Shown in pieces: positions 1,844 through 19,708 of a stretch of DNA of 64,000 bases. The position numbers and the translations under genes are program-made. Under the pieces are notes generated by a model. It did not search any database. It was not told the DNA's origin and worked only from the letters and a program-made list of their open reading frames with translations. The DNA lies in NCBI RefSeq assembly GCF_000315625.1, contig NW_005434669.1, positions 1 through 64,000 on the forward strand. The letters run 5' to 3'. The DNA comes from Guillardia theta CCMP2712 (Eukaryota; Protista; Cryptophyta). How positions within the stretch are numbered: position 1 is the first letter of the stretch; every line of letters begins with the position of its first letter.

Positions 1844-2356
1844 GCCTGAAATAACCGGCGCTGCCTGAAATAACCGGCGCTGCCTGAAATAACCGGCGCT
1901 GCCTGAAATAACCGGCGCTGCCTGAAATAACCGGCGCTGCCTGAAATAACCGGCGCTGCCTGAAATAACCGGCGCTGCCTGAAATAACCGGCGCTGCCTG
2001 AAATAACCGGCGCTGCCTGAAATAACCGGCGCTGCCTGAAATAACCGGCGCTGCCTGAAATAACCGGCGCTGCCTGAAATAACCGGCGCTGCCTGAAATA
2101 ACCGGCGCTGCCTGAAATAACCGGCGCTGCCTGAAATAACCGGCGCTGCCTGAAATAACCGGCGCTGCCTGAAATAACCGGCGCTGCCTGAAATAACCGG
2201 CGCTGCCTGAAATAACCGGCGCTGCCTGAAATAACCGGCGCTGCCTGAAATAACCGGCGCTGCCTGAAATAACCGGCGCTGCCTGAAATAACCGGCGCTG
2301 CCTGAAATAACCGGCGCTGCCTGAAATAACCGGCGCTGCCTGAAATAACCGGCGCT
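1844..2356. repeat. Perfect tandem array, 27 x 19 bp (GCCTGAAATAACCGGCGCT)
   Basis: 513 bp = 27 x 19; no variant units seen. Confidence 0.98.
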
Positions 2357-2357
2357 G

Positions 2358-2458
2358 CCTAAACCCTAAACCCTAAACCCTAAACCCTAAACCCTAAACC
2401 CTAAACCCTAAACCCTAAACCCTAAACCCTAAACCCTAAACCCTAAACCCTAAACCCT
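2358..2458. repeat. Telomeric repeat (CCCTAAA)n / (TTTAGGG)n, 13 full units plus partial units
   Basis: Perfect CCCTAAA units at 2364-2454. The C-rich strand on + is the orientation expected for a left chromosome end. Confidence 0.95.
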
Positions 2459-2562
2459 GACGGTTGGCACACAAAGGGTGCTGTATGAGGGGCAAAACAA
2501 ACTGGGGTCGAGTTCAACCCATGTGTAGCTTAGCCACCAACCCCTAGATGCCTCTCTAGCAC

Positions 2563-2740
2563 CAGCATCCCCTCTAGGAACAGCATCCCCTCTAAGCACA
2601 ACAGCATCCCCTCTAAGCACAACAGCATCCCCTCTAAGCACAACAGCATCCCCTCTGAGCACAACAGCATCCCCTCTGAGCACAACAGAATCCCCTCTAA
2701 GCACAACAGCATCCCCTCTACTAAGCACCACAGAATCCCT
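2563..2740. repeat. Subtelomeric 21-bp minisatellite (AACAGCATCCCCTCTAAGCAC), ~8 imperfect copies
   Basis: Read directly; it generates the spurious (RGDAVVL)n ORF. Confidence 0.9.
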
Positions 2741-2931
2741 TCCCCTGTCTCTTGACTTGGACTTCAAGTTTCCCTTTGAGAGAAGGAAATGACATGAAGT
2801 GGGAACAACAAAGATCGGCATGATTTTGATTCCTCAATGGGCTTCATGGAAACTCTTTTGTCTATCTCTTTTTTCGCACGGATAATTCTTGTAGCTTTGC
2901 CGAACGTTGACGGGACTGCTCCAGATCCACA

Positions 2932-4310
2932 AATGACTGCTCGGCTACGGCTCTGGGGAAGCAACCAGTATGGACAGCTAGGATACGACGGACTCGACAG
3001 CCTCCAACCAAATTCTGTGAGAAGCATGCAGCACATGGACCCAGCATCAATTCAACAGCTGGCACTTGGGGGTGGACACAGCCTTGCTCTTGATAATCAA
3101 GGGAAGGTTTGGTCGTGGGGTTGGAACGCGAAGGGTCAGCTTGGCAGAAGAACAAACACTGCCGAGAGTTGCGATATCCTGCCTGTCCATGGTTTACCTC
3201 CCTGCCAAAAAATTTCAGCAGGGCACGAAGAGTCCTTCTCCATAGACTTGGAGGGAAGACTGTGGGCGTTTGGTCAAGGGCGATGGGAACCATACACAGT
3301 GGCGGATCACTTGAGTATTGGAGAACAGAACTTCAAAGATGTTGATGGTGGTGTTTTTCATGCAGCAGCTGTAACAGAAAATGGTGCATGCTTTTTCTGG
3401 GGGAAGCATGGGGTCGTCTGTCATGACGATGAAGGAGCAATGAAGGTTATTTGTGCCTCCGAGTTGTTTGTCAGCAAAAGTTGCCTTAGAATTTTTCAGG
3501 TCGGGCAAAATCCAATCCGCTGGGAACCAAAGGATGGTAGCAGAGCAGTACAAGTGGTCAGTAGTAGCCAAGCTCTTGTCAGCTCCTGATGTGTCCTTAG
3601 GCATGCGGTTGGAAGCATACAGTGATACTGGACAATGCTGGACGAGTCTGGGGTGTAGGATCGAACAAACATGGACAACTTGGAAGTCACAGTCCGTCGA
3701 GTTTTCCTACGCCAAGAAGTAATAGACTTGTGATTATTTCATGTTTGATACCATCCTGCTAGTTATTGAGGAGCTGAATGATAAGAAAATTTTAAAGGTT
3801 TGTGATCCTCTTGTTCCGTGATTTTATTCAAATTGTAATCTCGAACGATCAGATTGATGCTGGATGGTCGCATACAGTGGTTTTGTATGAGGACCGCACC
3901 TTAAAAGCTACAGGAAGAAACAATTTCGGCCAATGTTCTACATTCAAGGATCATTGGGAAGATGTATTTCTTATTTTGCTATTCGATTCCCTCTCATTGC
4001 TTTCAAGTTTTGCTGCGGAAGTGAAATGATTCTTGCTTGTCGAGATAAAACGGTAGTCAGAAATGTTATCCAATTTTCGATGAGTGCTTAAACATTTTAG
4101 CTATTCGCAGCAGGTTGGAATGAACATGGCAATCTTGGTACAGGTGATACAGAAAATCGATTTTCACCGACCAAGATTGAAGTTGAAATGCACCAAAGTA
4201 TGCTACTAAAACTGCAATTCAGAGCACACTGTTTCTAACTTGAAAATTCAGATAGAGTGTTTTGTGCTGGAGGAGGACATTGTGCAGCGGTTACCGCGAG
4301 TCTCAGAAAC
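2932..4310 (+). CDS. RCC1/BLIP-II repeat beta-propeller protein, multi-exon
   Basis: LWGSNQYGQLG, LALGGGHSLAL..VWSWGWNAKGQLG, IDAGWSHTV, GWNEHGNLGTGD, CAGGGH motifs across GT-AG introns. Confidence 0.85.
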
Positions 4311-4349
4311 TAGACACGAACATTTCTTTCGCTTCGATATCTTATACAT

Positions 4350-4995
4350 TCAGTTTGAGAGAATGGCTTTGATGCTGTCTTTTAGCTGTTTGACCTTTGA
4401 GTGCCGTGCTTTCGCTTGGTCTTGCTCAGGTTTCGATAGATCACTGGAGATTCTCGACCTGTTTGCTACTGTGTAGGGGGAATTCATCATGTGCTTCGAT
4501 GCCTCACTTTCATTGTCTTCATCGTCTCCACTACTTGAACTGTCAGGGAAAGTTATTTCCATGAAATATACGAATGTATGACCTTAGTGATATTGACTTT
4601 GGCCATTTCGGCCTTGGCCGTGCTACCCTTTGAGTAGATTTCTGCGGAAACACAATGTAACTTTAGTAAACAGCTTCGTCCTTAACCTTGTCCACTTCTG
4701 ATGTCTTGTGCAGAGGTTTGATTCCCTGCGAAATGGGTTGATTTGTCACTTGCATTGAGCTGTGTGTGGCGTAAAGCAATTCCTATAACACGATTTACAC
4801 AGCGTCAATGGCCAGAGATGAGTACAATATTCTTTCGTTGATAGTTACACCAACTCAAAACGTCTCCTTCGGCCTGAAATAATTCATCATCTTAAAATTT
4901 GAACTCAGGGTATTTAGAACTACCATTGCTTTCAGATTCGTAGTTGACTTCACCCTGTCCGAACCGAAGGTTCGAATTGCTTCGCTCGGCGACAT
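4350..4995 (-). CDS. Hypothetical multi-exon protein
   Basis: Short minus-strand exons flanked by GT/AG, with the last exon in ORF 4350-4562. No recognisable domain; the start is uncertain. Confidence 0.35.
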
Positions 4996-5664
4996 GTTGT
5001 ACGGCTGACTTCTGAAATAGAGATCGTATTCTTGGCTAAATTTCTTTTGTATCGTGAGTAATTCAAGGTGATTATGTTCATGGTCACCGACGAAATTTCA
5101 TCAACGTTGACATGTTTTCTTGGTGCATGCTTGCAGCAAGTCAGTGTTGGCTATAACATCATCGAGCACACACAGATAATGATGCATTATTTACAAGACC
5201 CAGCAGCTTCAAGTGTCTGCAAACATCTTGATCCATGTTGAGCCCTCTACAGCGGGTTGGATCAGTTCCTGGTTGCAATGAGGTTTGAATTACGAGACGG
5301 CATCGTAAACTTGAGCCTTCAAGTATGGGAGGATATCGCATGGAACTGCATCTGCGAGAAACGATGAGATGGTGGACAAATGCAGAGACATCACTGACTG
5401 TCTTCTGGTTCTTCAAGCTGGACAGGAACAATGCTAGATTCGCTCAATTCTGCCGGCGAATTCTCCGTACAAGAGCTGATCACATCATGAAAGAGAGCAG
5501 CTCGCATATCAGTTTGCTTCTCGAAGGCTCCTTTCATCAGTGAAGTCTTGAGACGAATATCCATGCTTTCTTGCTTCATTCTTGCTGCCTCAACCTCCAT
5601 GGCTGCGTCAAACTTTGATGGCTTTTTTTTCAACTTTTCAAAAAGGAGTGTATATTGAAAAACG

Positions 5665-12266: not shown

Positions 12267-13865
12267 TCAAGCTGCATACTGCCAGATCTTGATGACCATT
12301 TGGCTCTCTTGATTGCAAACAGGGCAGCGGTTGGAGAATTGAGTACTGCACTCAAGACAGACGCATTGATGACCACATGGAATGTAAGCGTGCGATGCAA
12401 ATGAATTCATGCAAATCACACATCCATTGCTGGGATCTTCGACCGATTGGCTTGATTCGGTCTTTTCGTCGTTTTCTTGCGACTCTTGCATCTCTGCTTG
12501 ATCTTTGGTCTTGTTGGTCTGGCCGAGATTTCCCGAACCCCCGCCACTCTTGTTGTCTGTTTTCAACTCATTGGTATCTGCATTTACATTGTCCTTCCTT
12601 TTCTGGCCTTTGCCTTTCTTAACATTCTCTTTACTTTGTGCTGATCTTCCTTCGATGCTTGCAACAATCCTTTCAATTTCATCTTTCTCGAAACTGTTGA
12701 CAGAGGATGTTTGCTTTTTGCTATTTGGGTTCAGGCGGGATCTTTCTTCAGATTTTTTCCCCAATGACTTGCTTGTATTATCAAACCCGCCCCTCCCAGT
12801 TGCAGAGAATTTGTCATCAGTGACATGCAAGCTCATGATCGTAAGGAAGGATCTTGCTTGGTTCTGAACTTGCACGGAATGAGGATTCTCATCGAGGAGC
12901 CTTCTGACTATCTCAATAGCTCCGGCTGATTTCAATTTCGAAGCAAGTGATTTGGAGGCCGCAATACTGGTAATGGCGTTTAAAGCGTATTCGATCATAC
13001 CAGGTTTCTTACACTCATCCAGCAATTCAACCAAATGCTCAACGGCTCTCTTTTGACCAAACACATCTTCAAATTCGACGCTCAGTCTGCATTTATCGAT
13101 AATTTGACAAACTCCAGCTTGTATCTTCTGGCTGCTCGGGAATCTTTTCATGGCTTGAGCTATCACATCCATGTCTGCCTCCTTCACGATGGTTTCGATA
13201 AATTCACCCTGGCTGATTCTCGCCAGTAGAGTGACGATGGCTGCCTGAACCTCCTCATCGTGGCAGGTAGATTTCATGACATCCACTACCCCTCTGAGAA
13301 TACCCTTGTCAATTATGGCCTTGATCACTCCATCAACTTCAGTAATGGCTGCTACGAAATAAATGGCAAAATAAAGGAAATCAGCACACTGCCGGTGTTT
13401 CCGCATCGAGTGATTCACGATGTCAAGTATTTCAGGTCTTGCACAAGCCTTTTCTTGCCCATTTATGGCAAACTCTGTGAGAAATTCCATGCCGAGTTGC
13501 TGCAGCATTAGAATTTCTTGGTGCGACTTCATCATGATTATGAGCAGGTCAATTACTCCTGATTGAATCTGTTTGATTCTTTGAGAAGTATGCCCTGCAA
13601 GATACTTCAAGTCCCAGAGTGCGGAAAATTGTATGTGAGTGACATTAGGATAATTCTTGAGAGCAGCGATCAACATTTCGATGCCACCATGCTTCAATAC
13701 AACATGATGGACATCACGCCTTTCCCAAAGATCCGAAATGTAAACACAAGCTTTCTCTTGAACTTCCTTGTCATATGGCTTTGCTTTCATTTCCAATAGT
13801 TTCTCTTCAATCTCGCCTTCCGAATAGCATGCCTTTTTGGATTTGACCAAAAACCCTGACCGCAT
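12267..13865 (-). CDS. Armadillo-repeat protein with C-terminal RING finger (putative E3 ubiquitin ligase), intronless
   Basis: Repeated 'GGIEML..AL..YP..VQ..A' ARM-like units; C-terminal CVIC..IPCGHQCVCLEC..CPVC (C3HC4, IAP/MDM2-like). ATG at 13865. Confidence 0.85.
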   Translation of the reverse strand: MRSGFLVKSKKACYSEGEIEEKLLEMKAKPYDKEVQEKACVYISDLWERRDVHHVVLKHGGIEMLIAALKNYPNVTHIQFSALWDLKYLAGHTSQRIKQIQSGVIDLLIIMMKSHQEILMLQQLGMEFLTEFAINGQEKACARPEILDIVNHSMRKHRQCADFLYFAIYFVAAITEVDGVIKAIIDKGILRGVVDVMKSTCHDEEVQAAIVTLLARISQGEFIETIVKEADMDVIAQAMKRFPSSQKIQAGVCQIIDKCRLSVEFEDVFGQKRAVEHLVELLDECKKPGMIEYALNAITSIAASKSLASKLKSAGAIEIVRRLLDENPHSVQVQNQARSFLTIMSLHVTDDKFSATGRGGFDNTSKSLGKKSEERSRLNPNSKKQTSSVNSFEKDEIERIVASIEGRSAQSKENVKKGKGQKRKDNVNADTNELKTDNKSGGGSGNLGQTNKTKDQAEMQESQENDEKTESSQSVEDPSNGCVICMNSFASHAYIPCGHQCVCLECSTQFSNRCPVCNQESQMVIKIWQYAA

Positions 13866-13971
13866 TTTTGCCGTGCCAAGTTGAGGTCGAAGAGCAGAAG
13901 TATCTTTTTTGGGGCTGTGTGGGATCAATAAAGATGAGCTTGCGTGATCAAATAATGTGAGCTCTGATGCT

Positions 13972-14730: not shown

Positions 14731-14861
14731 TCAGCGTGCTCCTTTATTGCTATGGGAGCGATGATATGCACAGGTGGGACATGCGGGAAAGACGAGACGC
14801 CATGGTCCTGTAAGAAGATCAGGAAGTAAATCAACTACAAAGAGAGGTTAACCCACAAGGG

Positions 14862-17800
14862 ATGGAGTCTCAACCTCATCCTTTCACTGATGAATTCCAG
14901 GGCGACAATCGGATGTCTACAGCATTGGAAGAGCAGAAAGAGTATTTCATTCATTACGTCAGACGATTTGCCCTTCAGCCTGGTGATTTTCTAGAGCGAC
15001 AGATTCTAGAAGCATCGGCAAGATTCTCTGTCTACAATCTTTTGCGAAAAAGCCAATTTCATCATCATTGAGATCAGCCCCCCAGCTACTTTTGCTGTGG
15101 GCGACTATGATAGCTCTTAGCCCGAACCGTTTTCTCTTTGATTCAACTCTCTGGGACTCAAATTCCGTCACTCTGCATTCTCGTTTCGCCAGATTTTCAG
15201 TGCTAATGATGCGCAACGGATCAGCAGGACAAGATGTAGGCTTCGCGGGGGAGGCTGGACTTTTAATGAATGGATGCTACCTTGAGCCTGCGAGCTCTCG
15301 TCGCACGGGGGACCGAATCGTGAATGAGTATGAGCAGCCTGTTGCCTTCAACGGGTGGTTCTTGAGGAACGGATATGACTCACCAGTCACCGACATGTCT
15401 TTGGTGATTCTCGAAATATCGGAAGATGGCGAGAAGTGGAAGAATTTAGCAGTGAGCAAACCATATTGCTCTTTGATCAGAGACTCCTTGGAGTTGAATT
15501 ACGAAGGGATAGAGATGCCGACTACGCGAGGTGGCGAGGTTGTCTTTGATTTTACATCATCATGGTGTATGACACCAACCATCTTGGTTTCTGTTGCGCG
15601 GCTGATTGAAGTGTTTTCTCTAATGCTGGGCTTCCTTTTTGTATGGCATGGCAGTGATGATTTAATGCTGGTGAGTGTGATGCGTGTTTGACGCTGACTT
15701 CTGACAGCAACTGCGATTCTCAGATTTTGTGCACTGGATTCACCATTGCATCCCTGTTGTTGATCGGATCGGCCATCCTCTTTCGAATCGGCGGCGAGTG
15801 CTATGGCGTGCCCTTGACAGAAGGCTTGACGGTTCGATTTCAATTTTTCTGTCGAATTCAATGACCTGCGTTGCAGACCCTCCTTCTTTTCCCGACTCCA
15901 CTGATTTTTTCAGATATTTTTGGTTTTGAGTTTGGACTTATCTGGGCAGCGGTTAACCTGATCGACAAAGTGTCGAACGGCAATTCTCAGATTCTTTCTG
16001 AATGTTTTGTCGCTGCCGTGATGATCTCGGTGATTATGACCCAAATCTACGTTTCGCGAAAAGCTCGTTTCGACGTGAGACAGGATGAGCAACAGTTTGA
16101 TAAAGCATGGGACAGAATTTCGCGTAATGAACATGCTCATATATACTTGCAGAGCATTCAAAAAACCTTGTTGACAGTGCAACGAGAGTCCTATGAAATC
16201 TCACAGCGATTTCAAGCTGCAATGCAAAGTATAACTTCTACAAAACAGATTGATCTCGGAAAAGGGGCAGTCGTTGTCGAGCGAAATTCGCCAGCTTCGC
16301 TCAAGATGAAGAACAAACTGTTTCGTTCTACCTTCATCGACAGAGCCAAAGCTGAATATCAGGCATATTGCATCTCGAATTTGGATCAGCTCTACGCGCA
16401 AGCCATTCTTGTCTATCCCCTCTTCCTCCGCAAGGTGCAGCACATTGCTCACATCGCCGGCGGCTACTTTGCTGGGCGAGGAGAGGATGGAGCTGCCTCG
16501 TACATCTCATGGCGAGAGGCGGCAGGGAAGCCGGAGGAGGAGGCGAAGATCAAGTGGGCAGGGCTGAAGGGGTCGACAAGGGCGGTGGAGAAGATCGTGA
16601 GGTCGTACGGCGGGGACGTGAGCAAGCTGGTGGATGTGGTACGCGAGGCGATCGTGTTCGACAGCCTGCAGGACCTCAGCGTGGCAGTGCAGGCGATCAC
16701 GAGGGACAGCGAGATCCGGGTGATGCGCATCAAGAACCGCTTCGACGAGGCGTACGACGCGAGGGGGTCGGCGGGGTATCGGGACGTGGCGATCAATCTG
16801 TGCGTGGTAGGGGAGGAGAGCGGGAGGGTGGGGGTGTCGCGCCATGTCTGCGAGCTTCAATGCAAGTTGAGAGAGTTATCCATCATCGAAAGTTCTGATC
16901 AGCATTCACGATACTTGCACTATAAGAGTTGTTATTGTGACTTTCTTCGATCTCTCACTGCTGCGTTTCAGAGAAAGGTTGACATGTTTTTGAAGTCTAA
17001 GAAGCCGATTCGCGTCAAGGATATTGCTATTTCAACGCGACGAGTGTCTGATTATGCTTCAGACTTAGCAGATAAAGCACAAAATTCTTTCGACGACTTT
17101 ATCAAGTCATGCGATGGCTTCTCACGGCTCTTTCAGTTTTCGATGCTAAAGATTTCTTTGCCATGTAATATTCTTGATCGGGCTCTTGAGAACGGCTCGA
17201 ACGGTTTTCGCAATGCAAGCTGGACCAGCGTTTTGTTTTCTGCAACACCTGTAAGGGCTCTGCTATGGAAGTTTCAAACAATTTTCTTGTTTTCTCTCAT
17301 CGTATTTGGGCTCCTCGGTCTCTTTGTTCTGCACCGCCATGACAACGAGAGCATGAATCTTTTCTCAGCTCGAGCGGTCCTCTTCAGAACTGTAAAGACT
17401 CGCAATGGGACTGATGCAGCTTTGCTCACTAAGCCCTCGGTCTCTGACCTTGTTCTGTACAGATCTGGCTGTCGTGTCAACCAAACTTCAACCAAACTTT
17501 GGCTTAATGGAGCTGACGCTGTTTTGTATTCGAAAGAAGTGCTGGGGTTCAATGCCGTTCGCTTCAGGAATAATGAAGAGCAGGGCACCGAATGGGCTGA
17601 CGCGGTAATTTTTCAAATATACCGCATGGAGGAGGATTTCGATCCCAGGCAGCCATCAGTAGCCAAGAAGGATTGGACGTTGATTGCCACATCTTCGAGC
17701 CAGTTTCTCCATCTTCAGTGCGGAGAGGATGCTGTGAAGGGATCGAAAAACTTTTTGACGAGCCTTCAACGAGGATCGTTTTCCGAAGTCGATCTCCGAG

Positions 17801-19050
17801 CGACTTGGAACTTTAACTTGTTACAATATGGTTGTTACATCCCCATGATATTCGCGTTTCTTATCACAGCTCTTTCACGAATTTGCAATTTGATACGACT
17901 TTCTCAAGCTTTCTTTTGTTGTTCCATTGCGGGTCCTGGCGTTTCTGTTCTCGTGGTTATGCTGGGTCAGTGGGTGGAAGGAAGAGATTTGTTTTATGCG
18001 AATTTCGACACAATCATTCAGGGAATCTTGTGGATCATGCTGGGTTGTCTTGCTTGGTTCAGGCAAAAATGGTTCCTCTCATTCATCCCGGTCTTGTGGG
18101 GTACAGTCTTTGCGCTGTCAGGAGTCCACTCTGTTGTGATATGCGGACGACTGTCGTTTTACCTTCAACCAGACCCCTTCGCCTTCTTGTGCATCTACGC
18201 CTTGATCACACTCGCCAGATACGTGAGCAAATTCATTTCATTCAAGAAGATTGAAAAAGACCTCAAGGCATACGAAACAGAATGGAAATCTATAGTACAG
18301 ACTGATATCTCCGATCAACAAGAAATGCTGAAACGTGTGCAAGAGAATGTTAGAGAAACGATCGTTCGCCAACTTTTCGATGAAATTCACCAGACTGAAA
18401 GCGACCAGAACTTCGTTTCATCCAACCCACAAGTAAGCTTGACAATTCTGCCAACTCCGAACATCCAGCCAAGCCCAGTGAAATCCCTGGATCAGCTCTA
18501 CGCGCAAGCCATTCTTGTCTATCCCCTCTTCCTCCGCAAGGTGCAGCACATTGCTCACATCGCCGGCGGCTACTTTGCTGGGCGAGGAGAGGATGGAGCT
18601 GCCTCGTACATCTCATGGCGAGAGGCGGCAGGGAAGCCGGAGGAGGAGGCGAAGATCAAGTGGGCAGGGCTGAAGGGGTCGACAAGGGCGGTGGAGAAGA
18701 TCGTGAGGTCGTACGGCGGGGACGTGAGCAAGCTGGTGGATGTGGTACGCGAGGCGATCGTGTTCGACAGCCTGCAGGACCTCAGCGTGGCAGTGCAGGC
18801 GATCACGAGGGACAGCGAGATCCGGGTGATGCGCATCAAGAACCGCTTCGACGAGGCGTACGACGCGAGGGGGTCGGCTGGGTATCGGGACGTGGCGATC
18901 AATCTGTGCGTGGTAGGGGAGGAGAGCGGGAGGGTGGGGGTGTCGCGCCATGTCTGCGAGCTGCAGCTTGTCTTGCGCTCTTTCATGAAACTACGAAATG
19001 CGTCAGGGCACAAACGATATGTGAGCTTTCGTGACCTGCGAGGAGAATAG
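14862..19050 (+). CDS. Multi-pass membrane protein with two tandem [ectodomain - TM bundle - RelA/SpoT-like nucleotidyltransferase (SYNTH)] modules
   Basis: ORFs 15068-15691 and 15871-19050 are joined by short introns. Both modules carry LKG..RAVEKIVRSY, LVDVVR..IVFD, RIKNRF, GYRDV.IN, HVCELQ and H.RY motifs, plus several hydrophobic helices. Confidence 0.8.
16382..16856 (+). repeat. Internal duplication copy 1 (475 bp), encoding the SYNTH-like domain
   Basis: Identical to 18488-18962 except G16773/T18879 (synonymous Ala). Confidence 0.95.
18488..18962 (+). repeat. Internal duplication copy 2 (475 bp), encoding the SYNTH-like domain
   Basis: Offset 2106 bp (702 codons) from copy 1. Confidence 0.95.
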
Positions 19051-19261
19051 AAGAGAAATAGACCTTGACTGATAGGGGAGATACCCAACAGCTCTTACTG
19101 TGTAGTAGAAGTAAACTCTCTACACTTTCATGCAGGTCTCGAGTCGATCAAACTCTTCACATCTCATCAGTTATAATTCTCATTGTCTTGGCAGCGTGGT
19201 CGCGTCCGCCTCGTTACAGATGGAAACCGTAACAGCCGTTTTTAATGCCTGGGGCTCCGAG

Positions 19262-19415
19262 GCAGGGACGGCAGCGACGAGGAGAATGACAGGGGGAGGG
19301 CAGCGACGAGGAGAGGGAGAGAGGGAGGGAGGGAGAGGGAGGGCAGCGACGAGGAGAATGACGGGGGGAGGGCAGCGACGAGGAGAGAGAGAGAGAGGAA
19401 GGGCAGCGACGTGGA
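19262..19415. repeat. Purine-rich repeat (GGCAGCGACGAGGAGA units)
   Basis: About five GGCAGCGACG units separated by GA-rich spacers. Confidence 0.7.
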
Positions 19416-19708
19416 GATGCTGTAGGATTGATAGCATGCTGGGTGAGAGAAGAAGACAACAGGGGAGGGTGATGCAGGAGTACAGCACCTAGGCTCAACA
19501 CGAGAGGTATCTGCTCAGTTTCACCGCTTTACACAGCTTTGTAATGATGATTGAGGAGATGGGTTTCGTTTTCATTCGAGAGCTTGTGAAGAAAGAGAAT
19601 AGCAGGACCATTCTTGTGACTCTGAATCTCACTTCAACAATTGGCTCTGATCGAAACCTGCATAGGTTTACTCACTCATCTAAAGCTTCGAGTGGAAGAT
19701 TACTGGTA

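Follow-up and report, generated by a model that had tools for sequence, protein, structure and literature searches.

To our knowledge, alarmone synthetases in bacteria act in stress responses or as toxins, and those known from eukaryotes are plastid enzymes that came with the organelle. Among the toxins, Tas1 of Pseudomonas aeruginosa (PDB 6ox6) is a type VI secretion (p)ppApp synthetase with an immunity protein, and CapRel follows a sensor-plus-toxin logic, in which a C-terminal sensor releases the enzyme. The RelA/SpoT homologues (RSHs) of plants and algae, namely RSH1-4 and CRSH, are long forms that combine a hydrolase (HD) and a synthetase (SYNTH) domain and act in plastids (PMC6881373). 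Here we analyse GUITHDRAFT_100517, located at 14862-19050 in a 64,000-nt stretch of the cryptophyte Guillardia theta CCMP2712 (contig NW_005434669.1, positions 1 to 64,000; hereafter the window). Exact protein look-up identifies its product as a 1281-aa "hypothetical protein" (XP_005840511.1, UniProt L1JY75). An original prediction, made from the letters alone, had described a membrane receptor with two RelA/SpoT-like domains. Based on sequence and structure models, we lean with modest confidence towards a receptor-like protein of ~12 transmembrane (TM) helices with two tandem sensor-SYNTH modules, whose pyrophosphokinase output would be under sensor control.

Synthetase domains and their relatives

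Sequence profiles, structure comparison and a bridging phage relative agree, and thus place the predicted SYNTH domains in the RSH synthetase family. The AlphaFold2 (AF2) model of the second domain (SYNTH2) has a predicted local distance difference test score (pLDDT) of 92, and the best 50 matches of a Foldseek PDB search with this model are all RSH synthetases (probability 1.0). VIA-align gives Z-scores of 13.2 for RelP and 13.1 for RelQ, 11.4-11.7 for Tas1, CapRel and exported Streptomyces small alarmone synthetase (SAS), 8-11 for long RSHs and 7.4 for the best non-RSH nucleotidyltransferase fold; FaRel2, a toxic SAS (toxSAS) like CapRel, reaches just 6.0. At the sequence level, Tas1 ranks first in a single-sequence PDB search (E = 0.045). 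A profile of 40 family sequences retrieves Tas1 at E = 1.4e-4 and Bacillus subtilis YwaC (RelP) at E = 0.018, the latter over the whole domain and with motifs in register. The bridging relative is a 493-aa protein of Bordetella phage PHB04 (ATI15652.1), detected by tblastn (E = 1e-4), which passes Pfam RelA_SpoT at 30.6 bits, aligns with the family profile by hhalign (probability 97%, E = 7e-11) and carries the cryptophyte family's own motif variants (KxxxRAxEK, DivR, GYRD, ELQ, GHxxY).

The RelA/SpoT-type fold claimed by the original prediction is therefore supported by Foldseek, VIA-align, profile and hhalign comparisons alike, with one refinement: single-domain SASs, Tas1 and toxSASs stand closer to this domain than RelA/SpoT proper does. 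The Pfam RelA_SpoT match that it had suggested looking for was not obtained, as GUITHDRAFT_100517 does not reach the PF04607 gathering score and its paralogs score 14-21 bits for a cut-off of 27. This shortfall, together with the appearance of Pol mu, TdT and RsfS/iojap at Z 6-7.4 in the structure search, is what could be expected of a nucleotidyltransferase-fold enzyme of another kind (CD-NTase, polymerase-beta-like or RsfS-like) merely resembling RSHs. We consider such an enzyme highly improbable, given the clear separation of 26 RSH entries (Z 8.2-13.2) from all other folds, the motif-by-motif register with YwaC and Tas1, and the strength of the hhalign match to a Pfam-certified RelA_SpoT protein. 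Domain scans found no HD, TGS or ACT domain in the protein, in contrast to long RSHs and as the original prediction had said for HD.

In the 40-sequence family alignment, K76, K84, D98, R101, F106, N132 and E171 are invariant and R80, G145, R147, Q173, H188, Y191 and R195 are at least 90% conserved, while other positions average 45% column identity. The motifs K..R..EK, D..R, GYRD, E.Q and H..Y, first read from the letters alone, are thus invariant or nearly so. They occur in both SYNTH domains of GUITHDRAFT_100517, which carry all of these conserved residues. In the alignment with YwaC, the Asp of DxxGxR is paired with D98, the Glu of ExQ with E171, and both Lys of the phosphate-binding motif with K76 and K84. 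Misplacement of the catalytic Asp and Glu would have spoken against an RSH enzyme, but both lie at the expected motif positions in the family and YwaC alignments alike; their equivalents in Rel and RelQ are the metal-binding catalytic residues. This conservation pattern argues for live enzymes.

Two sets of phage and plasmid loci are also of note. In Bordetella phage vB_BbrM_PHB04 (MF663786.1), the SAS-like domain is C-terminal in the 493-aa protein (2242-3723), whose gene adjoins the portal gene. A small HD_4 hydrolase (small alarmone hydrolase, SAH) is encoded two genes downstream (3929-4507), an arrangement reminiscent of toxSAS plus SAH. Plasmid pDA100 of Photobacterium sp. DA100 carries two tandem unannotated open reading frames (3707-4495 and 4715-5539) with sub-threshold RelA_SpoT similarity (E = 4e-4 to 9e-4), next to a gene of the HopJ-type effector family; within the plasmid collection, the cryptophyte domain is matched best by one of these two frames.

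Module architecture, predicted topology and gene model

GUITHDRAFT_100517 consists of two modules, each comprising a TM helix, a beta-sandwich ectodomain of ~150 aa, a bundle of ~5 TM helices, a helical linker and a SYNTH domain of ~190 aa. This layout, which the original prediction had outlined, is recovered by AF2 for module 2. In the model of its membrane part (pLDDT 88), one TM helix precedes a beta-sandwich of ~145 residues, and the bundle that follows has five TM helices, of which the final one is prolonged into the cytosol. Module 1 matches a sensor-region profile iterated on paralogs at E = 1.3e-40 over its first TM helix, ectodomain and first bundle helix. As this profile was built from paralogs, the match indicates that the sensor regions of the two modules are homologous and that the skeleton they share, also part of the original prediction, is not a chance resemblance, although tblastx of module 1 against module 2 found no match outside a 478-bp block described below.

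Charge bias, sequon density and the absence of a signal peptide together strongly support a predicted topology in which the N-terminus is inside, the sensors are outside and probably glycosylated, and the SYNTH domains are in the cytosol, the side that the original prediction requires for them. Among 39 sequences, K+R on the predicted cytosolic faces amounts to 2.2, 1.5 and 2.5, versus 0.1, 0.15 and 0.6 for D+E, and loops predicted to lie outside are neutral or acidic. The density of N-X-S/T sequons in the ectodomain (1.64 per 100 aa) is five times that in SYNTH (0.33 per 100 aa), and one ectodomain Cys is 85% conserved. The N-terminus of the corrected protein (see below) is hydrophilic and lacks a signal peptide. 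With 1+5 TM helices per module, both modules would be oriented alike. AF2, charges and sequons thus point to a receptor-type design, in which an extracytosolic sensor, TM segments and a cytosolic catalytic-type domain are joined in a single chain.

A different use of this layout can be envisaged, whereby the SYNTH-like domains would be non-enzymatic nucleotide-binding or structural regulators of a 6+6-TM transporter or channel, with the signal passing from cytosol to membrane. The 1+5 arrangement, in which a large loop separates helices one and two, is reminiscent of polycystin and mucolipin channels (TRPML3 and other TRP proteins appear as weak matches), canonical RSH motif residues are missing and no hydrolase partner was found. 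We nevertheless judge a channel or transporter improbable. The putative metal-binding acids and phosphate-binding basic residues are invariant against the low mean identity of the remaining columns, a pattern usual for live enzymes; no part of the protein is less conserved than the TM bundle (19% identity), whose short loops leave no pore loop; and the channel matches in Foldseek have probabilities of 0.04-0.08.

The receptor-like protein is the product of a monocistronic eukaryotic gene with introns, as established by transcript contigs. The gene comprises a 1059-codon open frame (15871-19050, plus strand) and upstream exon pieces in other frames, and the public model assigns exons to 15107-15670, 15724-15831 and 15877-19047. 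Contigs from three public runs of three studies confirm the splices removing 15671-15723 and 15832-15876, whose GT..AG ends show that the contigs derive from RNA. Gene coverage by these contigs extends between about 14760 and about 19089, with breaks only at the edges of the internal repeat. In all three runs, the contigs also contain a T that the assembly lacks, within a short T run after position 15039. With this T restored, an uninterrupted frame encoding 1363 aa extends from the ATG at 14862, the start given by the original prediction, to the stop codon at 19048-19050. The 82 N-terminal residues regained include a conserved pre-TM motif and the first TM helix, and the corrected N-terminus aligns with the family sensor profile exactly from the corrected position. 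The assembly thus has a one-base error after 15039, because of which the annotated start is displaced to 15107 and the deposited protein lacks 82 residues; our analysis corrects the public model. Feature coordinates are given in Table 1.

Table 1. Features of GUITHDRAFT_100517, in coordinates of the window (domain and membrane boundaries are predicted).
Feature	Position	Strand	Evidence or remark
5' untranslated part (approximate start)	14760..14861	+	contig starts at 14759-14776
Exon 1, start codon 14862	14862..15670	+	corrected frame; T inserted after 15039 in 3 runs
Module 1 first TM helix, weakly hydrophobic signal-anchor	15080..15136	+	aligned to TM1 of sensor profile; hydropathy
Module 1 ectodomain, beta-sandwich, homologous to that of module 2	15137..15574	+	sensor profile, E = 1.3e-40
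Module 1 TM bundle, 4-5 hydrophobic segments (five by analogy with module 2), includes both introns	15581..16047	+	hydropathy scan
Intron 1, 53 nt, GT..AG	15671..15723	+	spliced contigs of runs X1, X2, X4; annotated model
Intron 2, 45 nt, GT..AG	15832..15876	+	spliced contigs of runs X1, X2; annotated model
SYNTH domain 1, small-alarmone-synthetase-like	16339..16941	+	family alignment
478-bp homogenised block, copy 1	16382..16859	+	2 synonymous differences from copy 2
SYNTH1 key codons	K 16567, R 16579, K 16591, D 16633, R 16642, GYRD 16774-16785, E 16852, Q 16858	+	
Cytosolic inter-module linker with conserved pre-TM motif of module 2	16942..17274	+	sequence
Module 2 first TM helix	17275..17352	+	AF2 helix 19-44; hydropathy 2.42
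Module 2 ectodomain, beta-sandwich, three N-X-S/T sequons, conserved Cys	17353..17805	+	AF2 strands 48-191, pLDDT about 90
Module 2 five-helix TM bundle	17806..18255	+	AF2 helices 196-345; positive-inside charge pattern
Module 2 juxtamembrane helical linker	18256..18447	+	AF2 last TM helix prolonged into cytosol; sequence
SYNTH domain 2, C-terminal	18448..19047	+	AF2 pLDDT 92; Foldseek, VIA-align and profile matches
478-bp homogenised block, copy 2	18488..18965	+	abrupt edges; 99.6% identical to copy 1
SYNTH2 key codons	K76 18673, R80 18685, K84 18697, D98 18739, R101 18748, GYRD 18880-18891	+	
SYNTH2 further codons	E171 18958, Q173 18964, H188 19009, Y191 19018	+	
Stop codon	19048..19050	+	open frame; transcript contigs continue to about 19089

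The gene is subtelomeric, as a telomere tract, (CCCTAAA)n or (TTTAGGG)n on the minus strand, lies at 2357-2454, about 12.4 kb upstream. Many paralogs are also found within 25 kb of contig starts. GA-rich degenerate direct repeats (19253-19417), with units near 29 and 43 nt containing GGGCAGCGACGAGGAGA, occur ~200 bp past the stop codon. A neighbouring 553-aa open frame (12267-13928, minus strand) has a C-terminal RING-like Cys/His cluster and no evident link to the receptor-like gene.

Family size, divergence and gene conversion

The paralogs, a count of which the original prediction had called for, are numerous: a search of the G. theta genome (87 Mb, 669 contigs) detected at least 90 SYNTH copies. 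Judging by position, they fall into ~29 two-module loci, in which the two SYNTH copies lie 2.1 kb apart within open frames 1000-1130 codons long, and ~18 loci that are partial or contain a single module, i.e. about fifty genes. An exhaustive HMMER search of a library of 1.8 billion proteins yielded 2656 representative clusters at E = 0.001 or better, and all named family members belong to cryptophytes (Guillardia, Hanusia, Rhodomonas and Teleaulax). A word-index homologue search with module 2 gave four proteins only, all from cryptophytes, a figure that reflects the limit of the word index. Two SYNTH domains are present in 35 retrieved proteins, some of them from transcriptomes, including those of other cryptophytes, and most long members combine SYNTH with the sensor region. 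Identity among G. theta paralogs is 48% in SYNTH but 21% in the ectodomain and 19% in the TM bundle. Such a sizeable, fast-diverging family suggests that many different inputs are fed into one conserved output. In addition, weak partial matches to the part containing K...K and D..R (E = 1e-4 to 1e-6) occur within long open frames at C4:1071657-1071851, C4:1079047-1079241, C16:429703-429876 and C524:2769-2951, which may represent further, more divergent SAS-like genes.

Within two-module genes, the catalytic cassette appears to have a history of its own. The two SYNTH domains of GUITHDRAFT_100517 share the nearly identical 478-bp block listed in Table 1, and DNA identity over the same 400-490 bp in six two-module genes, this one included, is 99.6, 95.7, 94.3, 92.5, 83.5 and 81.5%. 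In a tree of 21 two-module proteins, the two domains of some genes are sisters, while those of others group by position across genes. From these intragenic identities and mixed groupings, we conclude that the two-module layout is old and that the cassette has been repeatedly homogenised inside genes by gene conversion. The paralogs on contigs C528 and C30 show mosaic divergence, with a synonymous divergence (dS) of 0.01 in the ectodomain versus 0.47 in the TM bundle, which suggests segmental conversion between family members too.

Such a block could also arise if the two-module gene, or the block itself, were an assembly artefact, or if the locus comprised two adjacent genes. The copies are 99.6% identical with sharp edges, RNA contigs break at these edges so that no single contig spans the block, and the assembly does hold an error at 15039. 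We regard this explanation as the least credible of those considered here. Contigs from the three studies reach all four unique flanks, and one runs unbroken from 16827 to 18517, linking the two enzyme domains within 1059 codons of open frame. The same two-module open frame is found in ~29 paralogs, two SYNTH domains occur in transcriptome-derived proteins of other cryptophytes, and five other genes exhibit similar, less complete homogenisation (81-96% identity).

Proposed output and comparison with known systems

In the sensor-controlled pyrophosphokinase that we favour, each module is predicted to lead from an N-in TM helix to an extracytosolic sensor, back to the cytosol through the five-helix bundle, and via the helical linker to SYNTH. 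An event at the sensor or bundle would turn the enzymes on via the linker, in a manner akin to receptor cyclases. SYNTH would then move the beta-gamma pyrophosphate of ATP to the 3'-OH of a purine nucleotide, yielding (p)ppApp, as with Tas1, or (p)ppGpp, and this cytosolic output could serve as a second messenger or as a growth-arresting ATP drain. As the motifs resemble those of Tas1, a free-nucleotide product is favoured, possibly (p)ppApp. As regards ligand gating, the product and a signalling versus a defence role, we infer, as did the original prediction, what the protein may do. A complex prediction for SYNTH1 plus SYNTH2 scored 0.00, which gives no verdict on their pairing either way.

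Several observations weigh against this proposal. Two canonical RSH residues are absent, RxKxxxSxxxK being without its first Arg and DxxGxR without its Gly; the family has K-x3-R-x3-K and D-x2-R instead, exactly like Tas1 and the phage PHB04 protein. Pfam, NCBIfam and PADLOC scans of GUITHDRAFT_100517 and its parts gave chance-level matches only. The sensor and TM bundle have no recognisable PDB relative (nothing at E = 0.001 or better in Foldseek), a wide VIA-align search with the same model returned just helical-bundle noise (Z 7-9), and the ectodomain weakly resembles F5/8-type-C (galactose-binding-like) beta-sandwiches (TM-score 0.35-0.46, ESM Atlas). RNA depth is very low, with 3 reads in the sole raw-read run. 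The HD_4 domain was found at two genome loci only (C47:131263-132737 and C24:131220-132315), both of which also match RelA_SpoT at Pfam level and are presumably canonical long RSH genes; no stand-alone SAH was detected by the Pfam HD_4 scan of the genome. The apparent absence of a dedicated cytosolic hydrolase fits a costly "alarm" output, although this is weak evidence. Finally, coarse pairwise ratios of nonsynonymous to synonymous divergence (dN/dS) between paralogous sensors are 0.06-0.4, with dS often saturated, and the one pair reaching 1.16 is uninformative, being at almost zero divergence. These ratios indicate that the sensors are under purifying selection, and positive selection or an arms race is unsupported.

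The main rival keeps the receptor architecture and lets the SYNTH domains act on a macromolecule, namely tRNA, in an abortive-infection-like role; it holds this place because of its relatedness to toxSASs and a phage protein, the number of family members and the position near a telomere. CapRel ranks among the top structural matches (Z 11.6, root-mean-square deviation (rmsd) 2.7 over 151 residues; Foldseek E = 1.4e-4), and the nearest non-eukaryotic sequence relatives, Tas1 and the phage SAS-like protein with its SAH two genes downstream, both belong to conflict systems. The family is large, its sensors diverge fast and the gene lies ~12.4 kb from a telomere tract. RelP and RelQ are, however, slightly above CapRel in Z, the top sequence match is the nucleotide-directed Tas1, FaRel2 matches weakly (Z 6.0) and no positive selection was detected in the sensors. 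A tRNA-directed role thus appears unlikely to us, if less so than the channel discussed above.

Both a free-nucleotide and a tRNA-directed output would be compatible with a broader, tentative scenario, which we rate as possible but doubtful: cryptophytes would have their own cytosolic alarmone system, outside the plastid, with dozens of surface receptors of variable ectodomains carrying Tas1/toxSAS-derived pyrophosphokinases. A virus, a bacterium or an environmental cue would elicit (p)ppApp/(p)ppGpp synthesis or tRNA pyrophosphorylation, and thereby growth arrest or signalling. If true, this would be a eukaryotic innate-immunity-like or second-messenger pathway made from a bacterial/phage conflict enzyme, with cytosolic alarmone chemistry governed by extracellular sensing. 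The recruitment of such an enzyme as a receptor output would parallel TIR, cGAS and gasdermin in immunity. Should ~fifty receptor-like proteins indeed bear cytosol-facing synthetases, the eukaryotic cytosol would make use of pyrophosphorylated nucleotides or of chemistry like that of toxSASs. A direct test is feasible, as the domain is small, confidence in its predicted structure is high and it is clear which residues to mutate.

The original prediction had called the system possibly undescribed. This holds for the family as such, no description of which was found in the searched literature on Guillardia or cryptophytes with ppGpp, RSH, SAS, toxSAS or Tas1 (coverage outside subscription journals), and Guillardia is not mentioned in the searched supplements of the toxSAS survey. 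It does not wholly hold for the domain, which databases already recognise automatically in a few paralogs only: UniRef names two of them "RelA/SpoT domain-containing protein". What appears to be new is an RSH/SAS enzyme in a receptor-like architecture, with a predicted location in the eukaryotic cytosol and a greatly expanded copy number.

Among known systems, RelQ (SAS1) and RelP (SAS2) are the best structural matches (PDB 5ded, 6fgk and 6ewz; Z 12.4-13.2 over ~150 residues, rmsd about 3). Like them, the cryptophyte domain is a single SYNTH without HD, with K...K, the catalytic D, GY, ExQ and H..Y in register. Identity is just 11-14%, motif 1 here lacks its first Arg and DxxGxR its Gly, and the domain stays below the Pfam threshold. 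Moreover, RelQ and RelP are soluble bacterial homotetramers, whereas this domain belongs to a eukaryotic multi-pass membrane protein. Tas1 shares the K-x3-R-A-x2-K and D-x2-R variants, is the best PDB sequence match and has the highest identity in structural alignment (22%, Z 11.4). It is, however, a secreted interbacterial toxin with an immunity protein; GUITHDRAFT_100517 has the motif variants without the secretion or immunity context, and its enzyme domains are predicted to be tethered to a sensor/TM module in the producer's own membrane.

The sensor-plus-enzyme logic is comparable to that of the toxSASs (CapRel, FaRel2, PhRel) and phage SAS-like proteins, CapRel aligning at Z 11.6. The eukaryotic host, the membrane anchor and the two enzyme domains per chain set the cryptophyte protein apart from toxSASs; no toxSAS-type adjacent antitoxin or SAH was seen at the locus, nor any HD_4 gene within the 64-kb window. 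Plant and algal RSHs and the two canonical long RSHs of G. theta (HD plus SYNTH) belong to the same superfamily. In contrast to plastid RSHs, the receptor-like family lacks HD and a signal peptide, differs in architecture, is expanded in copy number and has its SYNTH domains predicted in the cytosol. As a matter of design analogy only, the two tandem modules of six TM helices plus a cytosolic nucleotide-converting domain recall mammalian-type transmembrane adenylyl cyclases (6TM-C1-6TM-C2), and the extracellular sensor joined via a helical linker to a nucleotide-modifying output recalls receptor guanylyl cyclases. The catalytic folds of these cyclases (class III cyclase) and of the cryptophyte protein (RSH) are unrelated.

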